From: Guillardia theta CCMP2712
Taxonomy: Eukaryota > Protista > Cryptophyta
DNA length: 64,000 nucleotides
NCBI RefSeq assembly: GCF_000315625.1
Contig: NW_005434552.1
Coordinates: 112,127 to 176,126, forward strand
Reading direction: 5' to 3'
Below the pieces are notes generated by a model. It searched no databases and was not told where the DNA came from. It saw only the letters and a list, made by a program, of their open reading frames with translations. Position numbers and translations under genes: made by a program. Position 1 is the first letter of the stretch, and each line of letters begins with the position of its first letter. Shown here one piece after another: positions 7,517 through 51,100 of this stretch.

Positions 7517-8878
7517 TCACTCTGTTACAGCTCCTTTCTGCAAGAACAATTTCTTCGCATCGTTTGACATGATTGCCCCACCGATTCGAGCTCCGATACA
7601 GTTGAGAATCGGGTCACTTCCACTGTATTTCTTGACGAGATAGAGTTGGTTATCTTCGAACAGTGCGAAGATCTTAATGCAGATGTCCGCACCAGTTACA
7701 GCAAGAACCTTTCCGTTCCACCCCCAACTCATGCATTTGATTTCAACACACTCCATGTGTAATTCTATGGTCTGAACGTGCTGTTTGACTCGGGTCTTCC
7801 AGGTTTCTATGATCGCTTCTTGCGAGCCAACTGCTATCATCTTTCCGTCCGGCCTGCAGCTGATGACCGAGATGGTGATGTCTGAGACGTTCTTGATCTC
7901 ATTGATACATTGCTCTGTAGCAACATTCCAAATCCGAATCTCTTCTTTGGTGGCAGAAGCAAGTATCTTTCCATCCTGTGCCCAGCTCAAGAAATCAGCT
8001 TCACAATCACTTCTCAGCTCGTGGCTGCAGATGTTCAGCTCGACGTCCCAGATCTGGATCACAGTATCATCCAGCAAGGAAACAGCAAGCGATCTTCTGT
8101 CGGGGCTCCAGCAAACGCAGCAAACATTGCGAACAAGCATTTTGGAGGGACCCTTCTGAAGACCGGATCGCACGTCCCATGCTTGAATCATGCCTTCGCC
8201 AGATACTGAGATTATCTTGCTTTGATCGATGCCCCAACTTGTTGCTGCGTCAGAGTCCCAAAAAGAATTCCTGCACTTCAAGCAAATATCGTCTTCTGCA
8301 ACATCCCAAAATTCAACATTGTCGTCATCTGACGCGATCGCAATTCTATCTCCACCTGGAGCCCAGCTCAAGCATGATGTGTTCGGCGTATTGTGGTACA
8401 ATGTTTTCAACCATCCTGTTGTGTTCCAGATTCTGAGTGTTTGATCTACATGTGCGGAGGCGAACTCCTCCCCAGCAGTCTTCCAGCTCAAGCATAAGAC
8501 TTTAGGAAGATCAGGCTCATGCAGACAGCAATGAATGTCAGCTGATCCAACCTCCCAAACCCGAAGAGCCTCGTCGTCCCAACCCGACGCGATGTAGTCT
8601 CCGTTGTGACACCAGCTCAAGCATGTTCCATTTCCTGCGGTCAGCTTTTGTGATCTGTCTCCATTGACGTGATTCCACACACGAATGGTGTTGTCATAGG
8701 CGGTCAAGGCGAGGCTTTTTCCATCTGAACTCCAGCTTAGAACCATGACTTCATCTTCACTGGGAGTGAGTGTGTTTGCAACAGTAGAATTATCTGCATT
8801 CCATATCTTAATTATTCCTTGCTTGTCGCCAACAGCAAGCAGCAATCCTACAGGATTCCAGCTTAAGCACGTTATCAT
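7517..8878 (-). CDS. C-terminal WD40 repeats of the same STAND gene, offset by a 1-nt frameshift
   Basis: 453-aa ORF of WD40 repeats starting mid-repeat (MITCLSWNP) and overlapping the upstream stop (ATGA). It ends LNCIGARIGGAIMSNDAKKLFLQKGAV, like the C-termini of NACHT-pentapeptide-WD40 proteins. Confidence 0.85.
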   Translation of the reverse strand: MITCLSWNPVGLLLAVGDKQGIIKIWNADNSTVANTLTPSEDEVMVLSWSSDGKSLALTAYDNTIRVWNHVNGDRSQKLTAGNGTCLSWCHNGDYIASGWDDEALRVWEVGSADIHCCLHEPDLPKVLCLSWKTAGEEFASAHVDQTLRIWNTTGWLKTLYHNTPNTSCLSWAPGGDRIAIASDDDNVEFWDVAEDDICLKCRNSFWDSDAATSWGIDQSKIISVSGEGMIQAWDVRSGLQKGPSKMLVRNVCCVCWSPDRRSLAVSLLDDTVIQIWDVELNICSHELRSDCEADFLSWAQDGKILASATKEEIRIWNVATEQCINEIKNVSDITISVISCRPDGKMIAVGSQEAIIETWKTRVKQHVQTIELHMECVEIKCMSWGWNGKVLAVTGADICIKIFALFEDNQLYLVKKYSGSDPILNCIGARIGGAIMSNDAKKLFLQKGAVTE

Positions 8879-11800
8879 TCTTTTTCATCGTTATGTAACC
8901 TCCGAGTACAATCACCCGACTCCACATCCCACAAGCTGACGACTCCATCAGACGATCCAGCTGCTAGCATCTTCTTGGAGGGATCAAGTTTCATGCAAGA
9001 TACAACCTGCAGTCTTGATCGAAAAGCATGTAAGCACACTTCTCTGTCAACCTCCCAAACTCGAACATCTCCTAGAGGTGAGCTCGAGGCCAGCATCTTC
9101 CCTCCTGGTCCCCAGCTCATGCTCGTCACCTCCCCAGCATGCTCCTCAAGCGAGCGGATGCATCTCTCCGACTCCACGTCCCACACCTCTATCAGCCCGT
9201 CCTCCCATCCCGTCGCCAGCGCCTTCCCGTCGGGCCTCCAGCACATGATGGAGACTTGAAGGTCGCGGGTTTGGAGGGAGTGGGAGCAGGAAGCTTGAGG
9301 GAGGTCCCAGATGTCGATGGAGGTACGAGGGGAAGGGCATGCAAGTCTCGTGCCATCAGGAGCTAAAACAGCCTCCGACTCATTGCATTCCAACTCTGGA
9401 AGAGTCTTTTCGTTGATAACATCCCAGATCCTTGTAATAGAATCAGAATCAGATATGATCCATCTTTCATCTCCTGAAATCTGAATGTACTTGATCGGAT
9501 CTTCGTGTCCTTGCAATGTGTAAACACATTGGCCTGACTCCAGGTCCCAAACTTGTATCACGCCGTTCCGTGATCCTGATACAAGAGTCTTTCCTTCGTA
9601 ACCATCAAAGCGTAAGAAAGTCACTCGCTCTGCAGTCTGCTGCAATGTCTTCAGGCAGATTCCAGACTCAACATCCCATATTCGGATAGTATGATCATTA
9701 GATCCCGAAGCTAACGTCTTACTCTCCGATCGAAAAGTTAAAAATGTGACATCTGCTGTATGACCTTTCAACATTCGAACACAGCGTTCTGTTTCAATGT
9801 CCAATAAACGAATGTGCCTCCCATTCCACACACTGGCAATCAGGATCATGTCTGAACACAGAAGAAACACTTCTGCCGCTTTTTTCACTTCACTATGTGC
9901 TTGTAGACTGGAGTTTGCATGTAAATCCCATACATCTACTATCGCACCTTCTTCCCACACTTGCGCGACTCTCCTGCCGTCTGGGCTCCATATCAACTGT
10001 TCTTTTTCCTCTATTTCCTTTCGCAAAGTGCATTCGACCTTGTTCGCTTCAAAGTTCCAGATTCGAAAATGATTTTCATCTGAGCTCAGAGAAATCATCT
10101 TCTCGTCAGAGCTCCATTCGATACCCGACACAGTTTCAGGAAGTCTCTCAAGCTTTTGTTCACAGTTTCCTGTCGTTGAGTCCCAAATCAGCATTTGTTT
10201 ATCATCTGATGTTGAAACACATTTGTGCTCGTCTGGATTCCAAGTCACACCTCTTATGGCTGAATGGTGCCCCGGATGAGTCAGAAGACAAACATCTGTT
10301 TCTGTGCTCCAAATTTGAATCATGCGATTCGCTGTGGCAGCCGCAAGAAGTTTGCCATCACTTGCAAAGTTCAATGCCTGTACTTCAGTCAAACTACCTC
10401 TGTCATTTCCACTCAGCCATCCATCATCATTCAAACTCCAAATCCTGATAGGACTATCAGCTGAGCTCGAGGCCAGCATCTTCCCTCCTGGTCCCCAGCT
10501 CATGCTCGTCACCTCCCCAGCATGCTCCTCAAGCGAGCGGATGCATCTCTCCGACTCCACGTCCCACACCTCTATCAGCCCGTCCTCCCATCCCGTCGCC
10601 AGCGCCTTCCCGTCGGGCCTCCAGCACATGATGGAGACATGAAGGTCGCGGGTTTGGAGGGAGTGGGAGCAGGAAGCTTGAGGGAGGTCCCAGATGTCGA
10701 TGGAGGTACGAGGGGAAGGGCATGCAAGTCTCGTGCCATCAGGAGAAATGGCTACAACGTCTACATCTGTGACTTCATGGATTGTAAGCATCACTCGTTC
10801 AGATTCGATCTCCCAAATCTCAATTCCTTTTGCCTCATTGTCTTCAGATAACAGTGTGATCAGAGTTGCTCCCTTGGGCCCAAAAAGAATCACAGACGAT
10901 CCATCTTTGAATAGTTGTACTTGGCTGATGCAATGTCCGGTCTCTATGCTCCATTTCCTGATCTTCCCATCAGTTTCAGCAGTATGAAGTAACTCATCTT
11001 CTGAATCGTAATGTAAATATGGTAATTCATCGAAGGGAAACCTTTCTTTTAGCTGCCCTGACTCCGCATCCAAAACCAAAACAAATCCACTAGACACACC
11101 GACGATAATGAACTTACCGTCATCAGTGTAGAGGAGAGCCTCGATTTTTTTTTCAGTTGGAATCGGCTCTTGTATAATGTTGAGTAGCGCAGAAAGCAGA
11201 TTCGAATCTTCTTCTCGCTGCCTTCCTTGTACTGCTCCTTCGTCCTTACTGTTCACACCGTCCTCCTCGTCGTCCTCCTCGTCGTCCTCCTCGTGGTCCT
11301 CCTCGTGGTCCTCCTCGTGGTCCTCCTCGTGGTCCTCCTCGTGGTCCTCCTCGTGGTCCTCCTCGTGGTCCTCCTCGTCGTCCTCCTCGTCGTCCTCCTC
11401 GTCCTCCTCGTCCACTTCTTGTGCTCTGTTGTGGATAAAGGAAAGCAGACTGGATAGGTTCCTCTGACTTTCTTGTACAGCTCCATCTTCTCGGTAGTCC
11501 TCCTCATGCAGTTCGTCCGATTCTTGTAGATCATCAAGCGTACGTGTATACAGGCATGCCTCAGTCTCTACGTCCCAAAGTTGGATGCTAGATAAGGATG
11601 CAGCAACAAAGGTCCTCCCATCAGGCCCATGCATCACTCTTTGAATGTCTCCGACCAGCTGAGGTTCGAGTTTGCGCCAAGTCTGTATCGGCTGATCGTC
11701 TTGTATTTCAAAGGTACATTTCCATATTTCACCACAGGAGGTTGCAACGCAGAGATTGCTTCCGTCCGGCGAAAAGCTTATCCCTTCGCTGTCTTCCGCA

Positions 11801-14148
11801 CATATTATGCTAGTATCTCCTTCCCCATTAAATGGAAATTCGCCGAAGAACATTCCAGTCAGGTTGGCGTCTGTCAGATCTGTCTCCAAGAACCAGGCAT
11901 GACACGCGTCTACCTGCGATAGATTGGCGCCTCTGAAGTTTGTTCGATGCATAACAATGTTTCGCAAGACAGCACCGCAGATCTGAACTCCAGACAAGTC
12001 CATCCCTGCGAACGACACGCCAGCAGCTGTCAGGAGGGTTGCTGCATTGGCTGCTGCAATGACCCGTGGACTTGAATCTGACTCAACTCCTCGAGATGCA
12101 CGAATAATTTCAAAGAGTTTCTGTTTGAATTGTGACGAGGTCTGCACAGACAGAACAAGAAACTTGATTGTCTCAACATCATGGTTAAGAAGACGCAGGC
12201 CCAGTCCATGCAGCATGACTTCATCAACGCAATCTCTAGTTAGCGTCCTCTCAACAATTTCTTGTGCAAGGAAAAAGCTTCTAAAACTGTCGTGATCGAA
12301 GTGGATACTGATTGCTTCAGCATGATCTGAGTTTGTCGTTGTTTGATGTATCAAGTGCTGCGAGAGCAAGCAGAACCCCACGTTTTCCTTGACATCTGTA
12401 CCAGCTGGCATCGAAAAGGGACTTTTCTGCAGAAACTGCTGTGAGGTCTCGAGCACAAGCCGGTTCTTGCCTGCACGGTGCATCTCAAAGGAGATGACTC
12501 GCACAGCTTCAAGGAATTTGTCCGGGTAATTCTCTTCTGTTATCCCAACTAGGTTGAAGCTGTCCTTTATCCCGGCCTTGCCTTGAAGTTTGAACCATTC
12601 CATTACGAAACATGTCTCAGCATACGTGGCATAAAGGTCGATTTTCGTCATGGGACAAGCGACCGAGAAGTCGTGTCCTCCATGACACAAGCGAGGCAGA
12701 GCTGAGATTACAAGCTTGAAAGCAAGTGGGGTTGTGACAAGTTTCTGCAAGTCTGGTCTTGCATCGAGAGCTGTTCGATAATCTTCTGCGGTCCAAGCAC
12801 TCTCAACAGGAGGGATGCTCATCTGTAGAAAACATGGAACAAGATCCCTGGCCTGTTTGAAACTCAAAGGACATATCCAGTAAGCATCCAGTGTTTTGCT
12901 TGTTGCTCCATCTGGATAAAATAGAGAAAATGACTTTCTACCAGATCTCAGAAACTCGCTTCTGCAGGTAACAACAACCTTAATGTTTGAATTGCCCCTC
13001 ATCTCAGCCACATACTTCTTCACCACGTTTTCTTTCATTCTGAGCTCATCATATCCATCTAATATCAGCACGAAAGAGTTTTGTTGCACAAATCTTCTCC
13101 ATTCTTCATCGGGCAGCTGGTGCCCAAGTTGTTTCTGGACGAATTCTCTGATACCCATTTGATACACAAGTTGCACGAATATTGGAACAGCATGGCACTC
13201 CTTCCATTCCTGCCACAATTCAGCGCTCCACTTCTTTGTAATCGTAGACTTTCCACTTCCCGCGGCTCCTTGCAGGAGTAAAACTTTGCTTTCGCTTGAA
13301 AGGAACATTTTTAGGACTTGACGAGACGGGATACTGTTGCTCTTCACATCGTCGGGACCAGTGTCTGTACAGGATATTTCAAGGTAATCTTGCAAAGTCT
13401 CTTCGACGTTGTCATCCATGAAGGCAGTCTTGAGGTTAGATCGCAACGTCCTGACAAGCCTGCCTGCAATAGACAAGTGCTCATTTCGTTCTGGTTGTAT
13501 CATTCCACTTTTAGGATCAACTTTTTCTGCAAACCTGTACCTAATACTGAAACACCATGCATTGAGAATCATGTTTGCCTTGAGAGGAGCAATCGGTGGA
13601 CTTTGAGAGCTTATCAGATGAAGAGAGACTTGATCTGTTTGGAACTTTGAGTCTTTGGAGTTGACATAATCTTCTACGAAAAACTTGATAGGATCATCTT
13701 TGTCTTCCTCTTTCTTAGTGATTAAATTTCCATCTTTGTCACCATGTGCTCCTGTGTTCACGTGAATAGCTTGGTTGAGCTTGGCTGCCAACTCAAGTAT
13801 TTTCATTACGTGCTCGTCGTGTACCTCTTTATCGCATTCCCAGAGGATTTGTCGAGGGTTCAGCTGAAGTGCAACGAAAGGACAACCTGGAAGCATGAAA
13901 TGACCAGTCTCAGTTTTCATCAGACCCAGCTCATATGCATTCTTCGCCAGGTTGTAGACTTTTCCAGTTCTAAGGTTGTCGCTTCCAGCAAGGCGCGATT
14001 TCGCCTCTGCTTTCTGTCGCTTGGATCCATCACCAACTCTGTCGGTACATCCACGCTTCATTTTGCAGTGGCGTAGAAGTGAAGCGCAAGATGGTGCTAG
14101 GAGGGTAGTACCAGCCTGAGAACAAGAGCAGCGAGTGAGGGGGGTCAT
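8875..14148 (-). CDS. NLR-like STAND protein, main ORF: Tox-HDC-like N-terminal domain + NACHT NTPase + pentapeptide repeats + WD40 repeats
   Basis: 1757-aa ORF. Walker A LLLQGAAGSGKST (~13243-13280), Walker B FVLILDGYDE, sensor VVVTCRSEFL, TTPL motif, FDHDSFRSFF. AAANAATLL...ANLSQVDACHAWFLETDLTDANLTGMFFGE pentapeptide region, then many GH...WD repeats. Confidence 0.9.
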   Translation of the reverse strand: MTPLTRCSCSQAGTTLLAPSCASLLRHCKMKRGCTDRVGDGSKRQKAEAKSRLAGSDNLRTGKVYNLAKNAYELGLMKTETGHFMLPGCPFVALQLNPRQILWECDKEVHDEHVMKILELAAKLNQAIHVNTGAHGDKDGNLITKKEEDKDDPIKFFVEDYVNSKDSKFQTDQVSLHLISSQSPPIAPLKANMILNAWCFSIRYRFAEKVDPKSGMIQPERNEHLSIAGRLVRTLRSNLKTAFMDDNVEETLQDYLEISCTDTGPDDVKSNSIPSRQVLKMFLSSESKVLLLQGAAGSGKSTITKKWSAELWQEWKECHAVPIFVQLVYQMGIREFVQKQLGHQLPDEEWRRFVQQNSFVLILDGYDELRMKENVVKKYVAEMRGNSNIKVVVTCRSEFLRSGRKSFSLFYPDGATSKTLDAYWICPLSFKQARDLVPCFLQMSIPPVESAWTAEDYRTALDARPDLQKLVTTPLAFKLVISALPRLCHGGHDFSVACPMTKIDLYATYAETCFVMEWFKLQGKAGIKDSFNLVGITEENYPDKFLEAVRVISFEMHRAGKNRLVLETSQQFLQKSPFSMPAGTDVKENVGFCLLSQHLIHQTTTNSDHAEAISIHFDHDSFRSFFLAQEIVERTLTRDCVDEVMLHGLGLRLLNHDVETIKFLVLSVQTSSQFKQKLFEIIRASRGVESDSSPRVIAAANAATLLTAAGVSFAGMDLSGVQICGAVLRNIVMHRTNFRGANLSQVDACHAWFLETDLTDANLTGMFFGEFPFNGEGDTSIICAEDSEGISFSPDGSNLCVATSCGEIWKCTFEIQDDQPIQTWRKLEPQLVGDIQRVMHGPDGRTFVAASLSSIQLWDVETEACLYTRTLDDLQESDELHEEDYREDGAVQESQRNLSSLLSFIHNRAQEVDEEDEEDDEEDDEEDHEEDHEEDHEEDHEEDHEEDHEEDHEEDDEEDDEEDGVNSKDEGAVQGRQREEDSNLLSALLNIIQEPIPTEKKIEALLYTDDGKFIIVGVSSGFVLVLDAESGQLKERFPFDELPYLHYDSEDELLHTAETDGKIRKWSIETGHCISQVQLFKDGSSVILFGPKGATLITLLSEDNEAKGIEIWEIESERVMLTIHEVTDVDVVAISPDGTRLACPSPRTSIDIWDLPQASCSHSLQTRDLHVSIMCWRPDGKALATGWEDGLIEVWDVESERCIRSLEEHAGEVTSMSWGPGGKMLASSSADSPIRIWSLNDDGWLSGNDRGSLTEVQALNFASDGKLLAAATANRMIQIWSTETDVCLLTHPGHHSAIRGVTWNPDEHKCVSTSDDKQMLIWDSTTGNCEQKLERLPETVSGIEWSSDEKMISLSSDENHFRIWNFEANKVECTLRKEIEEKEQLIWSPDGRRVAQVWEEGAIVDVWDLHANSSLQAHSEVKKAAEVFLLCSDMILIASVWNGRHIRLLDIETERCVRMLKGHTADVTFLTFRSESKTLASGSNDHTIRIWDVESGICLKTLQQTAERVTFLRFDGYEGKTLVSGSRNGVIQVWDLESGQCVYTLQGHEDPIKYIQISGDERWIISDSDSITRIWDVINEKTLPELECNESEAVLAPDGTRLACPSPRTSIDIWDLPQASCSHSLQTRDLQVSIMCWRPDGKALATGWEDGLIEVWDVESERCIRSLEEHAGEVTSMSWGPGGKMLASSSPLGDVRVWEVDREVCLHAFRSRLQVVSCMKLDPSKKMLAAGSSDGVVSLWDVESGDCTRRLHNDEKE
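9079..10745. repeat. 284-bp direct repeat pair (9079-9362 and 10462-10745) inside the WD40 region
   Basis: Both copies encode PDGTRLACPSPRTSIDIWD...GKMLASSS. One substitution seen (LQV vs LHV). Confidence 0.95.
11260..11412. repeat. Coding 12-bp tandem repeat encoding EEDH/EEDD
   Basis: (gtcctcctcgtg/c)n gives DEEDDEEDHEEDH... within the STAND ORF. Confidence 0.9.
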
Positions 14149-14269
14149 AAGTTGAATACCTTTAAACTAGTTCAGAGCTGTTTCTACAGAAAACTTTTGC
14201 TACATTTGTGAGCTCTGCCACTACTACGACTACTTACCATAAACAAGTGTGGAAGTGAAAACTGGTGAA

Positions 14270-14820
14270 TGGGAGAAGAGACGAGAAGACAGGCAAGTCT
14301 CGTGATTGTGAGTGAAGAGAAAAACAAAGACAACAGAGAAAAAAATGCGCTGGAGAGGAAAGGCAAGGAGGGAGAAGATTCAACGAAGAGAGAAAAGGAA
14401 AGTGGAGGAGAGGAGGTGGGAGGAGGGGTGTGGAAATGAGAGGATTGGAAAGGAGAGGAGAGAGGTTACGAAAGGAAAAGAAGGGGTGGAGAGGAGATGA
14501 AAGCAAAGCAAAAGAGATGAGATGAGAGGGGAGGCGAGGCGAAGAGAAGAAAAGAGAAGCGGACAGGACAGGACAGGACAGGATAGAGGAGAGACAATGG
14601 AAGAGGAGAGGAGAGGGGAGCTCAGGAAAGAAGAGGACATGAGAAGAAAGCTAATGAGAGGAGAGGAGTGGAGAGAAAAGATGACAGGACAGGACAGGAC
14701 AGGACAGGACAGGACAGGACAGGACAGGACAGGACAGGACAGGACAGGACAGGGGAGAAGAGGGGGGAGAGGAGAGGAGAGGAGAGGTGGACAGGACAGG
14801 AGAGGAGAGGAAGAGACACT
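14270..14820. repeat. Purine-rich microsatellites incl. (ggaca)n
   Basis: Direct inspection. Confidence 0.85.
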
Positions 14821-24150: not shown

Positions 24151-24415
24151 ACCAGCTCCAGCTCCAGCTGCTCCTGCTGCTCCTGCTGCTCCGTTCTCGT
24201 CCTTAACTCTGCTCTCATTCTCTCTCAATTTCCTTCTCCTCCTCTTCAACTTCTTTCCCTTCCTCTTCTCCACTCTCTCGCGTTTACCTGCCAGAACCAT
24301 TCAACGGCTTGACTGCTCGCGCTATACCCGCCCGCGTATGTCGCTGCCTCCTCCAGCCCTTTGAAGTCAAGATTTGGAGACCCGCAAACCAGCACCTGCA
24401 TGAACAACTTTCACT

Positions 24416-24499
<84 letters not shown>

Positions 24500-27400
24500 T
24501 TTCCTCCTCCCACCCCTCCTCCTCCTCCTCCTCCTCACAGCGGCAGCAATTGGTACTTTCTCGTTCCCTCCTGTCCCCTCCTCATGACCCTTCTGCCTTC
24601 TTCCTCGCTCCCTACGTTTCTCTCCCTTCCATTTTCTCACCTCCAGCTCTCGCGGGCTGAGCAGCTTTAGAATCCCCTCCTGCTCGAACATGAAGAGAAA
24701 CCCCTCCTTGAAGGGCTCGAACTGCGAGCTGACAGAGGAGGACAGGAGGTACTCAACGTATCGCTGCACGTACTCCCTCCTGTTGCTGTTTGTTACCTCC
24801 ACGTCTCCTCCTCCCTCCTTCAGCTCCACCACCCTTCTCTCCCCGAACGACTCGATCGCTGCCTGGAACGTCAGGCAGAAGACGTCCTGCACGTCCCCCG
24901 GCCCCGAGTACTCGAGGAGGGCGAGGAGGCCGCGGGAGGTCTCAGGACTGAGATCGGCAACGTCCTGGTGGTTGAGGGGGAGGGAGAGAAGCTTTTTCCA
25001 TAGCACGAGAGGCAGCTGAAGGTCAAGGAGCACGTGGTTGTAGACGGCAAGTCCCAGCAGCAACCCCACCAGCATGAACTCCTGGGAGGACTCGAGGGAG
25101 GAGGGGTTGAACCAGAGGACCCTCGTCTCCTCCTGCTGGAGGAACATACCGAAGGAGGGATCGAAGAGCTGCTGAACTATGAGCGCGAAGAACTCCTTCT
25201 TCAGCCCCCCCTCGTCAACTCCCTCCTCCCCTATGAACACAACCTTGAGCGGCTTGAACAAGTCGCTCTTCCTCTGCCGGCAGAGCTCGTCTAGCGCATC
25301 TTGCAACAGGTGAGATCGACGCAGTCGGATGATGCAGAAGGCAGGATGCGACGGGGGGATGCCGCTGCTGCTGGGAGGAGGGAGGGAGTACCCGTCCTCT
25401 GCCTTCGCTGCATGAGCCCTCTTGCTCCACAGCAGCCCTCCTACCGTCGCCTCCTCCTGCTGGACCAGCGAGCTTGTTGCGATACCTATGATCTGCTGCT
25501 GCTGCTGCCGGTAGCTAGCCTCCACCTGCAGCAGCTTTGACTTTGCCTCGTCGTTGAGCAGGAAGGAGAAGCGGCAGAAGCTGAAGTTTGCGCGCCAAAA
25601 GTCGTAGGAGGCGACGGGGCCAGGCAGCAGCTGCTGGGCCCTCCTCCACGAGATATAGTCAAAGTTCCAGTCGATGTGCTCCGAGATGAACTGGTTGTAG
25701 AACTTCCGCGCATCCAAACTTGGCGAGTCGACAGCCTTGAGGGCGTTTGCCTTGTACGCCAACTCCAGTACGACGATGACGTCCTGGAGGGGCGGGGAAA
25801 CTTGTTTGATCGCCTCGATCTCCTTGCTGAGAAAGTTGTTGAGGGGGGAGACGATCCTCGCGCCTAAGATATCGAGCGGACTGCGAGACCACCAAGACAC
25901 GATCTGCTTCCTCCGTTAGCTCCTCCCGTCACCTGCTCCCGTGAACTCCTCTTCCCGTTAGCTCCTTCTCCGCTCCTCTTCCTCTCGTCACTTTTCTCGT
26001 CCCTGTGCTGCCCTTCATGCTGCTCATCCTTGACTTCGGCGCCTCTCCATCCCTCTCGTTCTTCTCTCCCTCACTCTCTTTCCTACCCCCATTCTCTTCT
26101 CCCCTCCGCCTCTCCTCCCCTCCGCCTCTCCTCCCCTCTGCCTCTCTTCCACACTTTCTCTCCCTGTACCTGCTGCATCGTTGCATCATCGAAGCCAGCG
26201 ATCACTTTGCAGACAAGTAGAATGAGGTTCCCTCCAAACCTCTCGTTGCACATCACCTGAGCAAATTCAGCTGCTCCCCCCTCTGCTGCTCCTTTTCATA
26301 CTCTTCTTCCTCTCCTTCCCAACCTTCTCCCTCTGCCACTGCCTCTGCCTCTGCCTCTGCCTCTGCCTCTGCCTCTGCCTCTGCCTTTGCCCCTTCTCCC
26401 TCCTCCCAACTCACAGGGTTTTGAGCCAGCAGGATCGCAGCTTTCGCCATGGCGGTGCAGGCCTGAGCGTTGAGTTTCTTTCTCTGCTCGAGCATCTCGT
26501 TGAGCAAACTGCTCGTCGCGTCCACCAGGCTCGGCAGGTTCATCGCGCCCAGCGCCTGAATCAGCTCCACGTAGACCAGCTCGACTCCGAGGAAGTCGAT
26601 CCCCTCCCCTCCGCTTCTTGCGAAGACAGCGTTGAGGGCGGAGGAGGAGGAGAAGAGAACCTTAGTCTGGTTGATGAGCTCCGGCACCTGAGAGCTGATC
26701 TCAAATAGTATATTTCAAGCCTGCGACTCTCGCTGCAGCCTTTCTCTCCTTTCTGACCATCCTGTCCTGACCTGTCCTGACCTGACCTGACCTGACCTGT
26801 CCTGTCCTGTCCTCATCCTCTCCTCTTCCCCTCTCGCTTCTTTCACATCTTTTTCAACATTTTTCACGAGTATCAACAACTTACAGCAGTCGATCTCGTT
26901 CTTGACTCGGCAATCAGTTTTTGCAGTTGACGAACAGCAACAGAACCAAGAAGAGCTGTAAGCGAATCGTTCAGTCCCCCTCCTACGCATGAAGTCCTCT
27001 TTTGCCTCCTCTTGCTCCTCCTCTTGCTCCTCTTCTTCTATTTCTCCTCCCCCTCCTGCTCCTGCTCCTGCTCCTCCATCTCCCCTTGGTATGCCCGTCT
27101 CCTTACCGTAGTGATGCATCCTGTGAGTGAAGAGCTCCTGATATGCTCCGATTGTGACCCCGCTGGTCTGACCTCCTGCTGCCAGCAACTGAACCTGAAG
27201 GGCGCGGATCAGGCGATGATGTGGAGAGCAAGATGGAACAAGAAGAGCAGGCATTCGACGAGCACCAGGGGAAGAGTAGCTCCAAGACTGGGGAGAAGGA
27301 GAGCAGAGCACCAAGAAGACCGACGAGGCGAGAAGGAAGGAGGGAGGGAGGGAGGGAGGGAGGGAGAAGAAGAGGGCAAGGAGAGAGGCAGGGAGGCAGG

Positions 27401-29027
27401 AGGAGGAGGAGGAGGAGGAGGAGGAGGAGGAGGAGGAGGAGGACTCACCTGCAGGAAGCTTGAGTTCAAGGCCTTGGCGGCGACGGGGCTGAAGGGCATG
27501 CGAGCAAGGTGTTGCTCCTTGAGGTCAGCCGAGATCTCAACGGGCGTCAGCGCCTCCTGGTGGTCGCTCCCCAAGAACAGCTGCCCGTACTCGTTGGACC
27601 CGCACACAAACAGGACGCCGCTCGAGTCACGGAAGAGCGTGTGCTCGTAGCCGCAGGAGACTTCTGATATCTCCTGCTCCTCCAGCCTTTCTACCCTCCT
27701 TGGACGATGTTCGTCCCTCCTGCTCCCGTGTCCGAGCTGGCCCTTGCTCCCCATGCCGCAGCTGTAAACCTTGAGGTCGCTGCAGAGGAAGACGGAGTGG
27801 TTCCCCCCGCACGCCACTAGCTTCACGTTGCTGAGCGAGCTGACCTTCTGCGGGGTCCAGCTGATGTCCTCCTTCTCGTTCGAGTGCATCCACTCGATTG
27901 CCGCGTCCACCCCGACGTTGTTGCTAGCCATGAGCGCGCCCTCCGCCTTCTCCTGCGCATACCCCATCTCCAACAGAGTCGACAGCATCGCCTGGTTGAT
28001 CTCCGCCATGGATATCTCCCCTCTTCCTCCCTCCGCTCTCAGCCCGAGCTGCCCGTGCTTGTTCAGCCCCCACATGTGCGCTTCTCCTGTGCTCACTACA
28101 GCAGCACTATGATTCTCCCCAGCTGCGATCTGCACGACAGGAAGCGACCATAGCGCGCCGATCACTCGGGGAGTGCAGCAGTCCTCCCCGTCCCCGTGCC
28201 CGAGGGCCCCGTAGGCCGCCAGCCCGCACGAGAGGACTTGGGATGTGCTGGTAAGGATGAGGGTATGCGACTCTCCGCACGCTACCTGCATCACGTAATG
28301 CTCTCTGAGCGATCGGATCAGCCGCGGGACCTGGGAGGAGCGGAAGGTATCGTGCCCGCACTGTCCTCTGTCAGAGTTCCCCCAGGTCACCAGCTCGCCG
28401 TCCTTGGTGATGAGCGCAGAGTGCTGTCCTCCGCATGCCACGTCCACCGCCGCCATGGACCTGATGGACAGGTCGTTGTCGAGGTTGACGCGGATGGGGA
28501 GGAGGACGTAGCTTTCCACCTCCTTCCTCACGTTGCACTGGCCGCAGTCGTTGAGCCCGAAGCAGAAGGCCTGCAAGGTTGACGTCCGTCAGCAGCAGCA
28601 GCGAGCACAGATCCTCTCTTCCCCCTACCTCTCCATCTGCTGTCGAGCACAGGACGTGATTCCCTACGGCCATCCTCGTTATCCTCTTCGCTCCCGCCCC
28701 TCCCAGCGAGACAGGTACGGGCACCATGCTGTCCTTGTTTGTCCCCGTGCCTAGTTGACCGAAAGATCCGTTGCCGACGAGCCAAGCGCTGATGGCCTGA
28801 TTCAAGGAGGAGGGCTTCGTGATCTGGAGCGCCCTGAACCTTTTGAGCCGGTCCCTCGAAATCTCTTCTACCTCCATCGTGTCTGCTTCACTCCCTCCTC
28901 CTCCTCCTCCTCCTCCTCCTCCTCCTCCTCCTCCTCCTCCTCCTCCTCCTCCCTCTGCCGACGTACAAGCTGTGTCGTTGACCTCGCTTGTGAACTCTGG
29001 GATTATTCTCTCCTCTTCTTCCTCCAT
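23878..29027 (-). CDS. HERC-type E3 ubiquitin ligase: RCC1 repeats with embedded UBA domain + HECT domain (C-terminus lost in gap)
   Basis: RCC1 repeats (VACGGQHS...WGNSDRGQCG, IAAGENHS...WGLNKHGQLG) and UBA (LSTLLEMGYAQEKAEGALMASNNVGVDAAIEW). HECT motifs LKVVFIGEEGVDEGGLKKEFF and LLLKFVTGSDKSPIGG. Confidence 0.9.
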
Positions 29028-39164: not shown

Positions 39165-42100
39165 TCAAAGGCGGCGTGAACGCCGTCCCTGAGCAGAGGA
39201 AGGTACCGGACGTCGCTCACGCTGTTTGGCCCTGTCGTAGCGTTGAACCAAATTGCGAAGCGCTCGAGTGCGAACGAGATGTTCCACTGGTTCCCAGGTG
39301 TCATCAGCAGAGGAGAAACCTTTCCAGCGAACGAGATACTCCTTGCGTCCGCGCTGCGTTCGATCAGCGAGTAGGCGCTCCACTTCATAGAAGTCCGGGA
39401 GAGGCTGGGGAGGCGGAGCGGAGTCCAGCTGGGGCTGTCGTTGAATGTGAGGACGAAGAAACTTGGCGTTGAAGACGTCGATGGTCATCCTGGGGAAACG
39501 TTGCTGCACGTTGATTCTGTAGTTGTTGTTGGATAAGACTTCAGTGATCACAAAGGGTCCCAGAAACTTTTCACGAAACTTGCGCACTTCAAAGGTTTGA
39601 TTGAAGAGTCGTGCATCCAGCCACACCTGATCACCAACGTGCCAGTTGAGAACTCTGCGCGTCTGAAGTAAAGCAGCTTCGGTGCGATTGGCCATTGCTG
39701 CGAGCTTGTCGCGCACGACATTCTCATTCACCTGGATGAGATCAAGTGTAGATTGCACCTCAGGAATCACCGGACTGAGCGTCAAGTCCATGGCGGAGCG
39801 AGGATTGCGACCGTACTCCACTTGAAAGGCCGAGAGACCCGTTTCCTTGCGAGGCGCATGGTTGAGGGCAAACTCGAGAAAAGGAAGATGAGAGCTCCAA
39901 TCGTCACGAGCGGCGGTCAGGCGCGTCCTGAGCATGTCGAGGATGGTAGCGTTTGCGCGTTCCACCCGGCCATTGCTCTGAGGTGATACTTTGGATGAGT
40001 GGCGACCTGTACACCCAGAGTCTCAAACAACGCATCCCAGAAGCGGGNNNNNNNNNNNNNNNNNNNNNNNNNNNNNNNNNNNNNNNNNNNNNNNNNNNNN
40101 NNNNNNNNNNNNNNNNNNNNNNNNNNNNNNNNNNNNNNNNNNNNNNNNNNNNNNNNNNNNNNNNNNNNNNNNNNNNNNNNNNNNNNNNNGTCAACCATGA
40201 CGAAGATGGCGTCATAGCCTTCAGAGGTAATGGGAAGTCCGCTGAGAATGTCAACGGAGAGTACGTCGAATTTGTCAGCCGGAACGTCATGGCTCTTTGG
40301 AAGCCCCACAGGCCTCTGCTTGTATGCCTTGGCGGCTTGGCAGGTCAGACAAGAATGCACATAATTCTCAACATCACGCTTCATGTTGGACCAATATACC
40401 TTGGTGGCCAGGTCGAGATATGTCTTGTCAGAGCCGAGGTGACCCGCTTCGTCATGGCCCATGCGGAGTATGGCTGGCCGCATGGCGATGGGGATGCAGA
40501 TGCGACGACGACCCAAGGAGTCTTGATGGAAGAGCAGTTCGTCTTGGTAGATGAACGACTTGCATCCTGGTTGTCCTACCAGCTCGCCGTCACGTCCTAG
40601 TTGAAAGAGGATCTGGAAGTCCGGGCAGGTCGCATAGTGATGGAGGAGCTGTTGAGAGAAGTTGGCATTGGTCAGGATCTGGATGTGATGCAAACCCACG
40701 AGGAGATCTCTGGCCATGTCGTCAATGCGCGTCTCGCGAGCTGCAGCGGATGCCGGATCGGGCGAGGAGTCGACCACACGGCTGAGCGCATCGGCAACAG
40801 AATTCTGTTCCCCTGGGATGTGCTCGATTTCCATATCGTACTGCAGGAAGATAGACAGCCATCTGGCAAGGCGAGGGGATAGCTCAGGCTGAGTCGTCAG
40901 GCGAATCAAGCTATGATGATCGGTTTTGACTTTGAAGCGGCGTCCGATGAGGTAGTAGGAGAAGTTCTTCAAACTCTCCTTGAGAGCCAAGAGCTCGCGT
41001 TCATAGGTCGAATAGTTGCGTTCAGCGGAAGACAGCTTCTTGCTATAGTAGGCGATTGGATGCTCATTGCCATGTCGATCGCGTTGATGTAGAGTTGCGC
41101 CAATGGCTAGGTCACTAGCATCGGTGTACAGGATGGTCGCACGATCCTGCTGAAAGTGCCACAAGACTGGAGTCGTGGCTAATGCCTGTTTCAAGGCATC
41201 AAATGCGATCTGAGCAGATTTAGTCCACACGAAACGGCGCTGACTGTTCTGTAAGAGATCTGACAGCGTAGAGGATAGGCGCGCATAGTTGCTGACGAAT
41301 TTGCGATAGAAGTTTGCCATCCCAAGGAATGTACGCAGTTGTTTGACGGAAGCCGGCGTCGGATATTGTTGAATGGCCTGGACCTTGTTAGGCTCCGTGG
41401 CGATGCCAGCTTGGGTGATGGTATACCCCAAGAAATCAAGCTGCTGTTGCATGAATAAGCACTTGCTACGTTTGACATAAACTCTGTGCTCACGGAAGCG
41501 CTGCAGGACGCGGCGAATATCCTCGAGATGCGCTTCTTGCGTGCCCGCTGTACAGAGGAGCACATCATCAACGTACACAAGCGCGTTGGGGATATCAGCC
41601 AGTATACCTTGCGTAAACTTTTGGAAGGCGGCCGTCGCTGTTTTCAGACCGAACGGAAGCGCTTTGAATTTGTAAGCCCCTTGCTCAGTCACAAATCCTG
41701 TGTACTGACTGCTCTGAGGTGTGAGCTTCAGTTGCCAAAACCCGCTAGCTAAGTCGACTTTGCTCAACCATAGCGGAGTACCTGGCGGGTTTGCTGCCAG
41801 TTGGCGCCCCACACGCTCCATGAGTTCTGTGGGAATGGGAGGGGGAAAATTGTCATCGATGAGTTGTGCATTAACTTGCCGATAGTCCACACAGAAGCGC
41901 CAGATGGGCTCACCATTAGGCGAGGTGCCTTTGCGGACGAAGATAACCGGACTCTGGTAAAGAGCATTGTCGTCCCGTTCAATGAGGTCGCGCTCCAGCA
42001 GGAAGCGAAGTGTGTTTCCCATCGGAGTTTGAAGCGCCGAGGGAAGACGATATGGACGAAGACGCACCGGCTGCGCGCCTTCGCGAACCTTCAGGTCGAC

Positions 42101-44359
42101 ATCATACTCTCCGCGAGAGATGGGAGCCTGGATTGGAAGTTCATCGACAATGACGTCGTCGAAGTCCTTGATCAGCTGCTGAAGTAATGCCGCGACGGCG
42201 GCGTCAAGGGATTCGGGACTCGGATCCGACGGGGCGTGCATCGTAGTCGGAAACTCTTCTGTCAGCGACGTCATGATCCAAGGGAATTCATCGGGACCCA
42301 GAGGTCGCGATCCTGCTAGATCGTGTCGCATGTCGTGACACAGCGTGTCAGCACTGTGGTGAAATATGCAAGCACCCGCAGGCGTCGTTTGCGCTGAGGA
42401 TGTAGCAGCCGGCAGACCACGCGGGAACATCATAGCGACAGGAAGCTGCTGTCGACGTCCGGGGTAGGTCGAGGAGGGAATGGAAATCCGTCGTTCATAG
42501 AAGTCGATCTGCATCTTTAACTTCGTGATGAACGGGTGGCTCAGAATGGCGGGCAGCGCCGCGTGTGCATCAAGGATGAGGAACTCCTCCTGAGCCCTGA
42601 CGTCAGTGCCTGTGATCCGGAAGTCAAGGTGACATGCGTCCCGAACTATAACCGATCTGTCGTCCTTGGCGAACTGGACCTTCACCGGGGTGGCGATCTT
42701 GTGCGTAGATAACCTGAGTTCGTCTACAATCGCACGCGAGAGAATGGATGCCTGCGCCCCCGTGTCCAGGAGCGCCAGGATTTCTCTGGGTTGTTCTGCT
42801 CGTTCCGACTCAATTTGAATGGGCAGGTAGAGCAGGTTGGAGTCGATGTCTGCCGCCTGAGTCAGCGTCGAGGCGGTCTGAACTGTCAGCGTATTCATTT
42901 GCAGCAAGTCTTGTGCTTCGCCATCAAACTGCACGTGGTGGCGTCGACGAGACTGAGCGTCAGCACGCTTACCCTGCCGAGTCGTCACGGCAGCGGTAGT
43001 GGGCTCGTCCTCTTCACCAGAGGGGAATTGTTCATCTTCGCGCGCTGGCGAGGACGATGCACGAGGGGATCGTGCGCGGGCCTGATGAGGGCTCTGGCTG
43101 CGACGAGCTCGTCGGCAGTCCTTAGCATAGTGTCCCGAGCGTCCACATGCATGGCAGATGACATTGCGGCGCTCGGCGCTGGGTGATCGAGAAGGCTGTC
43201 GCTCCTGGCGACGGCCGTTATCCCGTCGTTGATCCCTGGACGAGTGACGTCCTGAGCGACCCCTGCCCGTGCCAGGGCCGGACTGGTATCGTGGGGCCGG
43301 TGTGTGCTGCGGATTGCCCCCCGAACGAGACTGACCCGGGACTCCCGTGACAGCAGGGGTTCCCTTACCTCGAGTGGGCTTACCCGCAAGCACATGCGAC
43401 GTCAAAGCATTCAGCTGTTTGACGGACCCATCTGGCATCGTGCAGTGGGCATACGCATCTAGTGAGACGCAATATGTGGCGAGCTGGAGAAACGTCGGCT
43501 CCGATCCTGTCGTTTGCAGATGGGAGGCACTCCATGCATTGAGGAGAAGCTTCGTTGTGACGTTAGTGATGCCCGTTGCAAAGCGTTCACGCAGGATCAC
43601 ATCGGTGGCGAATGCCGCACCACCGGGAATGAGATCTAGTTGTTCTTTGAGAAGCTTCGTACGCTTGTAGTATGTTGCCATGGATTCTTGCGGCTCCTGA
43701 CGGAGGTGATCCAGACAGGCAACGAGTTGTGCTCGAAGTCCCAATGGCATGTGTTGGGACTTGAGCTGGGTGGCGAACTTCACCCAGGGAAGCTCTCGAA
43801 GTTCGGTAGCCGAATAGGCTTGCACATAGTAGTCGCGTGCCGCCTGGTCCAAGAAATCCAGGGCACAAAGAACCCAGCAGGCTGTGGGTATCTGATGCAA
43901 CTCTAGTTCATACTGCATAGCTGTGAGCCATGTGAGAATGTTGCGTTGTGGTGACTGCCTCGTAGTGTCCAGCTTTGGCACTGAGCGCAACTTTGCCACC
44001 ATCTGAGCATGTGTGTCACCTGACACATTGGAGCGTCCCGCCGCTGCGGGATGCTGTCCAGTAGAAGCAGCCGGCGTCGGCGCCGCGGGCTGCTGAGGGG
44101 CCATCAGAGCACCCATCTGAAAGGCGGCGGCTAGTTGCGCCTGCAGCAAGGCCACTTGTTGCGCGAGACCCTCCATCGTAAGCGTCTCCGTGGGCACACC
44201 AAAGGTTTGTGGCAGTTGCTGGGTATCTTCCTCCTGAGGGAGCAAATCCTCCGTATCGCTGTGACCCGCCGCAGACTGCCATTCCGTATCAGAAAGCAGT
44301 GCGTCTCCGGTCGCTGTCTGTTTGCTAGCGTGAGCAGTGCGACGTGTATAATGTGTCAT
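39165..44359 (-). CDS. Gag-Pol polyprotein: gag zinc knuckle, aspartic protease, RT, RNase H, integrase, chromodomain
   Basis: CHACGRSGHYAKDC; LLDTGA; WRFCVDYR, LPFGL, YVDD; TDASD...YERELLA. Integrase HDEAGH...CLTC and ERANATILDMLR; chromodomain FYEVERLL...EYLVRWKGFSSADDTWEP. Gap at 40048-40189 and a 1-nt frameshift at ~39983. Confidence 0.95.
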
Positions 44360-48127: not shown

Positions 48128-51100
48128 ATGCAGTACGGGTTGTCGTGACCCTTTTTGGACCCCTCCCCCACTCCCTGAACATCCGGTCTGTCTACCCCCT
48201 ACCCCCCCTTTTACCCCAACCGCACACCCTCTAAAGCACCCCTCCGTACTCCTGCAGGATGACCAAAATCAAACGCCGAAACCGCACATACACTTTCAAA
48301 TTTCACCCCTACCCCCTACACTCCACCCACCCTACCCGACCAAACAAAGACTAAAAAAGACTAACAAAAAAATCTCCTAAAAAAATCACCACGCCCAGGC
48401 GGACGCCCGGCGCATGGCGGCAGGGCGGNNNNNNNNNNNNNNNNNNNNNNNNNNNNNNNNNNNNNNNNNNNNNNNNNNNNNNNNNNNNNNNNNNNNNNNN
48501 NNNNNNNNNNNNNNNNNNNNNNNNNNNNNNNNNNNNNNNNNNNNNNNNNNNNNNNNNNNNNNNNNNNNNNNNNNNNNNNNNNNNNNNNNNNNNNNNNNNN
48601 NNNNNNNNNNNNNNNNNNNNNNNNNNNNNNNNNNNNNNNNNNNNNNNNNNNNNNNNNNNNNNNNNNNNNNNNNNNNNNNNNNNNNNNNNNNNNNNNNNNN
48701 NNNNNNNNNNNNNNNNNNNNNNNNNNNNNNNNNNNNNNNNNNNNNNNNNNNNNNNNNNNNNNNNNNNNNNNNNNNNNNNNNNNNNNNNNNNNNNNNNNNN
48801 NNNNNNNNNNNNNNNNNNNNNNNNNNNNNNNNNNNNNNNNNNNNNNNNNNNNNNNNNNNNNNNNNNNNNNNNNNNNNNNNNNNNNNNNNNNNNNNNNNNN
48901 NNNNNNNNNNNNNNNNNNNNNNNNNNNNNNNNNNNNNNNNNNNNNNNNNNNNNNNNNNNNNNNNNNNNNNNNNNNNNNNNNNNNNNNNNNNNNNNNNNNN
49001 NNNNNNNNNNNNNNNNNNNNNNNNNNNNNNNNNNNNNNNNNNNNNNNNNNNNNNNNNNNNNNNNNNNNNNNNNNNNNNNNNNNNNNNNNNNNNNNNNNNN
49101 NNNNNNNNNNNNNNNNNNNNNNNNNNNNNNNNNNNNNNNNNNNNNNNNNNNNNNNNNNNNNNNNNNNNNNNNNNNNNNNNNNNNNNNNNNNNNNNNNNNN
49201 NNNNNNNNNNNNNNNNNNNNNNNNNNNNNNNNNNNNNNNNNNNNNNNNNNNNNNNNNNNNNNNNNNNNNNNNNNNNNNNNNNNNNNNNNNNNNNNNNNNN
49301 NNNNNNNNNNNNNNNNNNNNNNNNNNNNNNNNNNNNNNNNNNNNNNNNNNNNNNACTTGTCGTGCGAGGACGAGGAGGAGATGTGAAGAGGGGAGGGAGG
49401 ACGAGGAGGAGATGTGAAGAGGGGAGGGGCGTCAGCGGAGGCATAGAGGATAGCATACATGCTGTTGTAAGATGCAAGGAGATACAAACATAACAGCGCT
49501 GACAGGAGAAAACGTCAGCATGCCCGTCGCTCTCCCTCCCATCACCGGTCGCCCTGTACTCTCTGTCCTCCCCATCGCTTGTCGGCTTGCTGCTCACTCT
49601 CCATCCGTCTCGTCCTCATCCCCGTCGCTTTCGCATTCTCCTGTCATCTACTACCTACCCGGCAGAGTGTATGCCTGACAGAAGAAAACGACAGAAGAAA
49701 ACGTCAGCATTGATTAACCTGACCCATGTCTGCTGCCCATCCCCCGACCTCCTCCTCCTCAACGACACGACGTTGACGTCTTTGCGCTTCAGGCTCTCGC
49801 TGGCCTGCCCGCGCGCTGCCTCCTTGCTCCCTCCTGCTCCAGTCTGTTGAGTCGTCGCCTCCTCTCGCTGCTGCCCGTCGCTCTCCCTCCCATCACCGGT
49901 CGCCCTGTACTCTCTGTCCTCCCCATCGCTTGTCGGCTTGCTGCTCACTCTCCATCCGTCTCGTCCTCATCCCCGTCGCTTTCGCATTCTCNNNNNNNNN
50001 NNNNNNNNNNNNNNNNNNNNNNNNNNNNNNNNNNNNNNNNNNNNNNNNNNNNNNNNNNNNNNNNNNNNNNNNNNNNNNNNNNNNNNNNNNNCTACCCGGG
50101 AGAGTGTATGCCTGCATGCACATGTCAGACATGTCGGCACTGCATGGCTTGCCCTCTATGCCCGTATCGTCCCCCTCCTGCCTGCGTCTCTATCGCTCTT
50201 CCTCTNNNNNNNNNNNNNNNNNNNNNNNNNNNNNNNNNNNNNNNNNNNNNNNNNNNNNNNNNNNNNNNNNNNNNNNNNNNNNNNNNNNNNNNNNNNNNNN
50301 NNNNNNNNNNNNNNNNNNNNNNNNNNNNNNNNNNNNNNNNNNNNNNNNNNNNNNNNNNNNNNNNNNNNNNNNNNNNNNNNNNNNNNNNNNNNNNNNNNNN
50401 NNNNNNNNNNNNNNNNNNNNNNNNNNNNNNNNNNNNNNNNNNNNNNNNNNNNNNNNNNNNNNNNNNNNNNNNNNNNNNNNNNNNNNNNNNNNNNNNNNNN
50501 NNNNNNNNNNNNNNNNNNNNNNNNNNNNNNNNNNNNNNNNNNNNNNNNNNNNNNNNNNNNNNNNNNNNNNNNNNNNNNNNNNNNNNNNNNNNNNNNNNNN
50601 NNNNNNNNNNNNNNNNNNNNNNNNNNNNNNNNNNNNNNNNNNNNNNNNNNNNNNNNNNNNNNNNNNNNNNNNNNNNNNNNNNNNNNNNNNNNNNNNNNNN
50701 NNNNNNNNNNNNNNNNNNNNNNNNNNNNNNNNNNNNNNNNNNNNNNNNNNNNNNNNNNNNNNNNNNNNNNNNNNNNNNNNNNNNNNNNNNNNNNNNNNNN
50801 NNNNNNNNNNNNNNNNNNNNNNNNNNNNNNNNNNNNNCCTTGTCCCTCATGTTCCAGTCGTCCCGTATCTCCGTCGCTCGGGCATGCTCAAGTCTGACGC
50901 TGCTCTCTCTCTATCGCCACCAGCGCCCTGCCCGCCCTTGGACCATTCCATGTCGTCCAACCTCCTCATGTTTGTGTTCGATTTTGTTCTCTCCTTGCTT
51001 GCTTGTACAACATGTTGACATGCACTGAGCTCTTTTTTCCTGCGTGTCTGCCGTACCCTGGTCTCCTCCTCCTCCCCTGCCCCCCCCTGCCCAACCCCCT

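Follow-up and report, generated by a model that had tools for sequence, protein, structure and literature searches.

What is encoded at positions 7517 to 14148 of the stretch of the Guillardia theta CCMP2712 genome analysed here (64,000 nucleotides, hereafter the window), and what might the N-terminal tip of this protein do? An earlier note, made from the letters of the window, had read it as an NLR-like receptor of an alga in which WD40 repeats sense a ligand, a NACHT NTPase oligomerises and an N-terminal protease of the Tox-HDC family, known from bacterial polymorphic toxins, is thereby switched on. NLR-like STAND receptors are modular proteins. To our knowledge, little has been mapped of the effectors that they use in organisms other than animals, plants and fungi, and we know of nothing reported on innate immunity or programmed death in cryptophytes. 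We are aware of no solved structure and no assayed activity for Tox-HDC, whose function has been predicted from its toxin context.

The gene and its reading frame

In the reference sequence, the locus is divided between two open reading frames (ORFs) on the minus strand, 8875-14148 (1757 aa) and 7517-8878 (453 aa), which are out of frame with each other and share the four bases 8875-8878. The region and the motifs reported in the earlier note were found in place, but the range that it gave holds two ORFs in the reference.

7517..14148, minus strand: whole coding region; two reference ORFs, joined into one frame by reads
8875..8880, minus strand: frame break adjoining a homopolymer run, where one base is missing from the reference relative to the reads

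When public reads were aligned to 8700-14650, a T inserted behind 8880 was seen in three of the five DNA raw reads of one run, and the extra base was likewise present in the contigs of two further runs, which come from different studies (depths 19 and 103). Since three independent runs carry this base, a single frame is restored and the locus is one gene rather than two. The split is an assembly error in the reference, the WD40 blade at the break is continuous, and the gene model is corrected here to a single gene in place of two ORFs. The encoded STAND/NLR-like protein, of about 2,180-2,210 residues, is composed of a Tox-HDC-family domain, a conserved linker, a NACHT NTPase, pentapeptide repeats and about 28 WD40 blades, in this order. 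It is free of stops across the 1757 + 453 codons, and its catalytic-signature and Walker motifs are all intact. The homology and domain searches described below were run on the two ORFs separately rather than on the joined read-through protein. The cryptophyte family to which the gene belongs has a lower GC content than its flanks.

Between 8700 and 14117, the contigs follow the genome without a single joint in the read alignment. At their 3' side they end some 115 nt past the stop codon (7517), and upstream of 14117 their depth is lower by a factor of 4 to 15. Taken together, these observations amount to mRNA-like behaviour, and indicate that the gene is transcribed, without an intron across the long ORF, in two runs that are only presumed to be RNA. 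The single run recorded as RNA contributed six reads over the locus.

Both transcript-like contigs stop at 14117, adjoining a pyrimidine-rich tract and a CAG, in a region where the 5' end may lie:

14116..14240, minus strand: candidate 5' end region; acceptor-like CAG at 14118-14116 and candidate donor ATG/GTAAGT at 14240-14231

A 122-nt in-frame intron between this donor and this acceptor is a hypothetical sequence model, and no joint supporting a 14240/14116 intron was seen in the aligned reads or contigs. Translation probably starts at the ATG at 14061-14059 (ORF aa 30), which is preferred because M30 and the following residues ('MKR...') match the starts of paralogs L002 and L004-L006. The choice of 5' end leaves the domains unaffected. 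A 28-nt loose end at 14117 of one contig was considered as a 5' exon and rejected: it occurs neither in the window nor in the genome, half of it resembles inverted 14024-14038, and it is probably a fold-back assembly chimera.

Homology of the N-terminal tip to Tox-HDC

The N-terminal tip of the protein carries three short motifs, all of which precede the Walker A (aa 294-302) and Walker B (aa 361-368) sequences of the NACHT:

13507..13932, minus strand: Tox-HDC-family domain, ORF aa ~73-214; alpha/beta fold, H135, D160, S175 and C199 conserved
13741..13764, minus strand: motif 1, HVNTGAHG (N131, T132, G133, H135, G136), aa 129-136; glycine-rich loop directly after a beta strand
13669..13683, minus strand: motif 2, FFVED (D160), aa 156-160; helix in the model
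13546..13563, minus strand: motif 3, NAWCFS (C199, S201), aa 196-201; strand-to-helix junction

The H, D, C signature which the earlier note had described on the N-terminal side of the NACHT was thus recovered on translating 8875-14148 (minus strand), and it is conserved in homologues. A phmmer search of 1.84 billion representative proteins yielded 82 hits at E <= 0.001, and 57 of its hits were aligned with the window domain and seven paralogs (65 sequences). The sole invariant column of this alignment is C199, and N131, T132, G133, H135, G136, D160, S175, W198 and S201 are each kept in at least 90% of the 65 homologues. The same motifs are invariant across 11 paralogous copies in the genome. 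Judged from these alignments, the motif set is far beyond chance. The three-motif pattern of Tox-HDC, consisting of [SG]xH, a conserved D/N and an absolute C, is represented here by TGAH135G, FFVED160 and AWC199.

Comparison with the Pfam model of Tox-HDC (PF15656) gave, for the window domain, an E value of 0.12 and 13 bits, below the cut-off of 21, a match which is not evidence when taken alone. The family was matched, however, by eight of the 11 paralogs (best E 4.7e-5) and by 26 of the 65 aligned homologues (best E 6.6e-8). Among the proteins that phmmer matched directly to the window domain, P0045, P0051 and P0060 each bear a precomputed PF15656 annotation. When the 11 cryptophyte domains (alignment A1) were compared by hhalign with 17 members of the other main clade (alignment A4), the profiles aligned motif on motif with 99.8% probability and an E value of 2.6e-29; clade A4 includes PF15656-annotated proteins. 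In addition, a homologue from Hanusia phi (P0002), 51% identical in the domain, carries precomputed PF15656 (PF15656.13) together with NACHT (PF05729), Pentapeptide (PF00805) and WD40. On the basis of the paralog matches, the annotated hits, the profile alignment and the annotation of P0002, homology of the tip to Tox-HDC can be regarded as established at the sequence level, with the signature residues intact in this copy. The assignment made in the earlier note therefore holds, even though the Pfam match of the copy itself is sub-threshold. Of the families to which that note had pointed, Tox-HDC was reached through paralogs and profiles, whereas the caspase clan gave no Pfam match at E up to 10. 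A sequence-profile search of the PDB with the tip returned only a spurious match to SYF2 (E 0.038).

In the 2012 description by Zhang, de Souza, Anantharaman, Iyer & Aravind, Tox-HDC is the tip at the C-terminus of polymorphic/RHS toxins that proteobacterial pathogens secrete, and it was predicted to be a 'thiol peptidase or transglutaminase' (PMC3482391). Pfam searches with the ORFs of the window protein found no RHS, secretion or releasing-peptidase domain. That the protein falls outside the definition of a toxin tip is a matter of context rather than of homology.

The NACHT, pentapeptide and WD40 body

The remainder of the protein consists of the following elements:

13018..13284, minus strand: NACHT P-loop core, aa 289-377; Pfam PF05729, E 3.2e-7, 30.8 bits against a cut-off of 26.7
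13243-13269, minus strand: Walker A, GAAGSGKST, aa 294-302; intact
13045-13068, minus strand: Walker B, LILDGYDE, aa 361-368; intact
11896..12051, minus strand: pentapeptide-repeat linker, aa ~700-751, between the NACHT module and the WD40 array; Pfam PF00805, E 3.5e-8
7517..11826, minus strand: WD40 array, about 28 blades in roughly four propellers, across the frame break; Pfam WD40/propeller families, E down to 1e-131
11224..11439, minus strand: 12-nt coding microsatellite encoding an acidic D/E/H run in the first propeller region; repeat search family D1; reads cut there
9076..9362 and 10459-10745, minus strand: internal duplicate in the WD40 array, 287 nt, 99% identical; repeat search family D2

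The number of blades follows from a WD-motif count of 18 in the first ORF and 10 in the second. By Pfam, the WD40/propeller signal is strong from aa ~1049 to the end of the first ORF, and the second ORF is WD40 throughout. The contig in which the internal duplicate is collapsed has about twice the depth (243 vs 131), which supports a real duplicate; the microsatellite, too, is borne out by the reads. With an NTPase bearing Walker A and B motifs and with C-terminal, superstructure-forming WD40 repeats, the protein has the features of a STAND/NLR-like member of the NACHT clade. The effector-NACHT-WD40 layout of the earlier note was borne out by the Pfam matches and the located motifs. The pentapeptide linker occurs as well in the paralogs.

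A family shared with Hanusia

The genome was searched for further copies (87.1 Mb in 669 contigs), and at least 11 full paralogs of the tip domain were found, all of them in very long open frames and each followed by a P-loop. Four paralogs were extended (1443-2116 aa), and all four possess the NACHT-pentapeptide-WD40 body. The nearest proteins in public collections belong to another cryptophyte, Hanusia phi, in keeping with the algal host proposed from the letters. In a maximum-likelihood tree of the domain, the copies from cryptophytes fall into a single clade (support 100/99), within which the Hanusia sequences are interleaved among the paralogs. This interleaving places the expansion of the family before the divergence of Guillardia and Hanusia.

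The same tip on other STAND proteins

The search for other proteins combining Tox-HDC with a NACHT, which the earlier note had suggested, was productive. Bacterial and metagenomic examples were found, as well as one on an NB-ARC protein:

P0017, 699 aa: tip N-terminal, NACHT downstream
P0026, 1573 aa: tip N-terminal, NACHT and HEAT downstream
P0057, 1364 aa: tip N-terminal, NACHT and ankyrin downstream
P0045, 1134 aa: tip N-terminal, NB-ARC and TPR downstream

In all four, the tip precedes the P-loop by 80-110 residues. The contig of P0045 is bacterial-looking, with Fic, HTH and group II intron maturase genes, and another long contig bears stand-alone Tox-HDC genes beside NB-ARC genes. The STAND fusions are scattered over the domain tree. 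Judging from these sequences, the pairing is not unique to algae, and an effector module would be expected to show just this kind of repeated fusion to the N-terminus of STAND NTPases. Related loci (alignment A3) were found in two named genomes only, a Simkaniaceae MAG and a Chlamydiota MAG. Finally, the endofungal bacterium Mycoavidus cysteinexigens has a protein (P0085) with a NACHT-pentapeptide-WD40 body, 30% identical to that of the window protein and without the tip.

A transfer from bacteria is suggested as possible by the lack of an intron across the long ORF, by the GC content below that of the flanks and by the Mycoavidus-like body. A wider reading, which we offer tentatively and consider somewhat doubtful, would integrate these data as follows: Tox-HDC might be a structurally unsolved class of cysteine enzymes that serves as a STAND-activated executioner in bacteria and in the alga, being a fused effector on NACHT or NB-ARC proteins and stand-alone or repeat-fused in chlamydia-like symbionts (the Simkaniaceae and Chlamydiota MAGs), and the cryptophyte family could be a bacterial conflict system that moved to the algal nucleus and then expanded.

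Predicted fold of the tip

An AlphaFold2 model of the tip, built on the 65-sequence alignment, reached a pLDDT of 94.3 and a pTM of 0.90. Briefly, the modelled chain starts with a beta hairpin and continues with beta-alpha-beta units. His135 is found just after a strand (model residues 74-78), Asp160 falls inside a helix (model residues 99-110), Ser175 is in a strand, and Cys199 sits at the junction of strand 139-142 and helix 147-150 (model residues). In Tox-HDC, the H, D/N and C would be expected to sit each at the end of one of three consecutive strands and to make up a single active site. The strand which contains Ser175 (aa 174-178) is an extra one, placed between the strand of the His and that of the Cys.

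Structural searches with this model stayed at background level. Foldseek against the PDB gave dual-specificity phosphatases as its best matches (E 0.05), and a second look at its top 1000, re-aligned with VIA, returned the same matches. A wide VIA search of 48,161 representative chains likewise produced background only, BFVD yielded nothing, and the shape search of the ESM Atlas reached TM values up to 0.52, background again, with clusters of PTP-fold and Mur-ligase-C proteins. A protein atlas search returned no usable match. The model thus presents the tip as an alpha/beta sandwich of the Rossmannoid kind, for which these searches gave no solved relative. The caspase-like fold envisaged in the earlier note did not emerge, the model being confident and a match to caspases or to any solved fold being absent.

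Proposed mechanism and alternatives

The reading that we favour, and to which we give a somewhat better than even chance, is that of an intact, transcribed gene for a STAND/NLR-like Tox-HDC-NACHT-pentapeptide-WD40 switch, in which oligomerisation triggered by a ligand would activate a cysteine enzyme for defence or death. In such a switch, the WD40 array would keep the NACHT off until it senses a ligand, derived from a pathogen or from stress, upon which the NACHT would oligomerise in a nucleotide-dependent manner. Oligomerisation would cluster the N-terminal Tox-HDC domains and so turn on a cysteine-dependent activity, of the thiol peptidase or transglutaminase type, and the activated tips might then damage the cell or the invader, resulting in a defence or cell-death response. 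We infer the switch mechanism, the oligomerisation step and the peptidase activity by analogy, the mechanism being established for Apaf-1, NLRC4, plant NLRs and NLR-like proteins of fungi and bacteria.

As to the chemistry of the tip, the 'protease' label is a prediction that goes back solely to the 2012 paper (PMC3482391). The tip could instead be a cysteine-dependent enzyme other than a peptidase, such as a deamidase or transglutaminase, or one acting on a nucleotide or another small molecule, with the NTGxHGxxxG loop that follows a beta strand serving to bind a phosphate or a ligand; the logic of the STAND switch would be unchanged. This is rather unlikely in our estimation, given that every structural match was at background level and that cofactor-binding families obtained no Pfam score. 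A PTP-like CX5R phosphatase in particular was rejected, the arginine being unconserved in alignments A1, A3 and A4.

A housekeeping role is less likely still: the protein would be an NTPase for signalling or scaffolding, similar in type to NWD1/TEP1, rather than an immune or death switch, and its Tox-HDC domain would serve normal physiology as a processing enzyme under regulation. A lineage-specific expansion to at least 11 paralogs, an internal duplication and a coding microsatellite are typical of conflict genes; moreover, the tip is related to predicted toxins, and its fusions to STAND proteins in bacteria look like conflict systems.

A caspase-fold protease (caspase/CHAT/C80-like), which the reading of the motifs as HG...C implies, we consider very improbable. 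The tip bears a superficial likeness to the caspase pattern, in that HG comes after one strand and xWC after another, and a caspase- or flavodoxin-like sandwich had been speculated for Tox-HDC in 2012 (PMC3482391). However, caspase, gingipain, legumain, CHAT and C80 structures are absent from the top 50 of the 48,161 chains and from the re-aligned Foldseek top 1000, Pfam detects none of the clan at E up to 10, and in the model the additional strand separates the His and Cys strands.

A pseudogene or assembly artefact (two ORFs, frameshift, repeat collapse), which the overlapping reference frames, the 99% internal duplicate and the microsatellite might bring to mind, is scarcely credible in the face of the extra base, which three of five DNA reads share with two independent sets of contigs, the roughly twofold depth of the duplicate, the stop-free codons and the intact catalytic and Walker motifs.

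The switch with a Tox-HDC effector that we favour appears to be new as a combination. In the literature searched, Tox-HDC is mentioned only in Zhang et al. 2012 (PMC3482391), and no link of Tox-HDC to NACHT/STAND proteins or to cryptophytes was found. The earlier note had known of no description of a Tox-HDC and STAND combination, and none is present in the searchable literature, although the architecture is visible in the automatic Pfam annotation of P0002. The protein would thus represent a modular NLR-like receptor with an effector type undescribed in the literature searched, the function of which we infer from its sequence. The cryptophyte gene family provides a second, independent context for Tox-HDC, and it points to a regulated, dangerous activity.

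Comparison with known systems

The tip shares with the Tox-HDC domains of bacterial toxins (PF15656; PMC3482391) a homologous sequence, the same motifs ([ST]GxH, D and an invariant C) and an alpha/beta fold. In those toxins, however, it is the C-terminal tip of a secreted protein, whereas here it is placed at the N-terminus of an intracellular eukaryotic STAND NTPase.

With Apaf-1/caspase-9 and NLRC4/caspase-1, the likeness lies in the proposed principle, namely that a cysteine enzyme becomes active once oligomerisation of the STAND NTPase has arranged it suitably. The means are different: a separate protease of the caspase fold is recruited there via CARD, while in the cryptophyte protein an enzyme with no detectable caspase fold is fused in cis.

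Fungal NWD/HNWD proteins (HET-E/HET-D type) resemble the cryptophyte family in their tripartite logic, in the NACHT and WD40 body, in the lineage-specific expansion of paralogs and, to some extent, in internal WD40 duplication. They differ from it in their tips, since HET, HeLo, PNP_UDP and patatin domains are absent here (for HET, no Pfam match at E up to 10 on aa 1-280), and in the pentapeptide linker, which is present here. In addition, a highly conserved repeat array is found in the fungal proteins, in contrast to the one near-identical internal repeat pair of the window protein.

With the bacterial NACHT/NB-ARC conflict systems (bNACHT/Avs-like, with modular N-terminal effectors), the likeness lies in the metagenomic and bacterial proteins that bear the same tip on NACHT, NACHT and HEAT, NACHT and ankyrin, and NB-ARC and TPR architectures, and in the body of Mycoavidus P0085. 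The gene described here differs in being a nuclear gene of a eukaryotic alga, and the defence role of the Tox-HDC-bearing members is putative. These bacterial parallels suggest that Tox-HDC and the STAND NTPase may form a cross-kingdom pair of effector and switch, which is testable.

Reading frame and internal repeats of the NLR-like gene

In the homopolymer run at 8875-8880 of the window, the reference assembly is one base short compared with independent reads and contigs, and it is because of this missing base that the WD40 gene appears split into two ORFs in the reference. Two kinds of repeat were found within the WD40 array, together with a candidate donor on the upstream side of the gene:

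9076-9362 and 10459-10745: direct repeat of 287 nt, 99% identity, copies 1383 nt apart
11224-11439: coding microsatellite with a 12-nt unit, encoding an acidic (D/E/H)-rich run between WD40 blades
14240-14231: candidate donor, ATG|GTAAGT

The 287-nt pair, which is a recent internal duplication or the product of gene conversion, is collapsed in the contigs, at roughly double the depth, and short reads break at the microsatellite. Further upstream, from 14250 to 14700, the gene strand is an extreme CT-rich low-complexity tract that includes GTCCT repeats; this region may represent a promoter or 5' UTR.

Base composition and neighboring features

The GC content of the gene (8001-14000) is 45-49%, versus 52-59% in most adjacent 2-kb bins. 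This low GC and the intron-free ORF would both fit a possible foreign (bacterial) origin of the NLR-like gene. Other features of the window are as follows:

24284-28576, minus strand: HERC-like gene in several ORF pieces, with a HECT domain in 24284-25900 and RCC1 repeats plus UBA in 27209-28576
39917-44359, minus strand: ORF of 1480 aa with protease, reverse transcriptase, RNase H and integrase zinc-binding domains
about 48430-51000: assembly gaps, filled with N

The 1480-aa ORF represents the pol of an LTR retrotransposon of the Ty3/gypsy type. The HERC-like gene, presumably split by introns, is found in pieces, whereas the NLR-like gene has a long ORF free of them. At about 48430-51000, the N runs account for the bins of low GC and for pseudo-ORFs that overlap one another in every frame.

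Tox-HDC-like domains in paralogs and in other contexts

Two further observations concern paralog loci of the same genome. In L010 (G000:C118:112594-116049), about 640 residues of extra open frame precede the Tox-HDC domain as a putative N-terminal extension, and in L012/L013 (G000:C44:476715-477193), the domain of one paralog is divided between two frames, which could reflect a frameshift, a pseudogene or a further assembly error.

Among the homologous proteins, P0014 carries the Tox-HDC-like domain fused to a Nakanori-like domain and P0042 carries it fused to a SAM domain, thereby extending the range of Tox-HDC-like architectures beyond STAND proteins. Finally, an ENA metagenome contig (L018, 16.7 kb shown) carries Tox-HDC as two stand-alone genes of 223 and 224 aa, each adjoined by an NB-ARC gene and with ankyrin-repeat genes close by, an arrangement that is possibly a split version of the Tox-HDC/STAND fusion.
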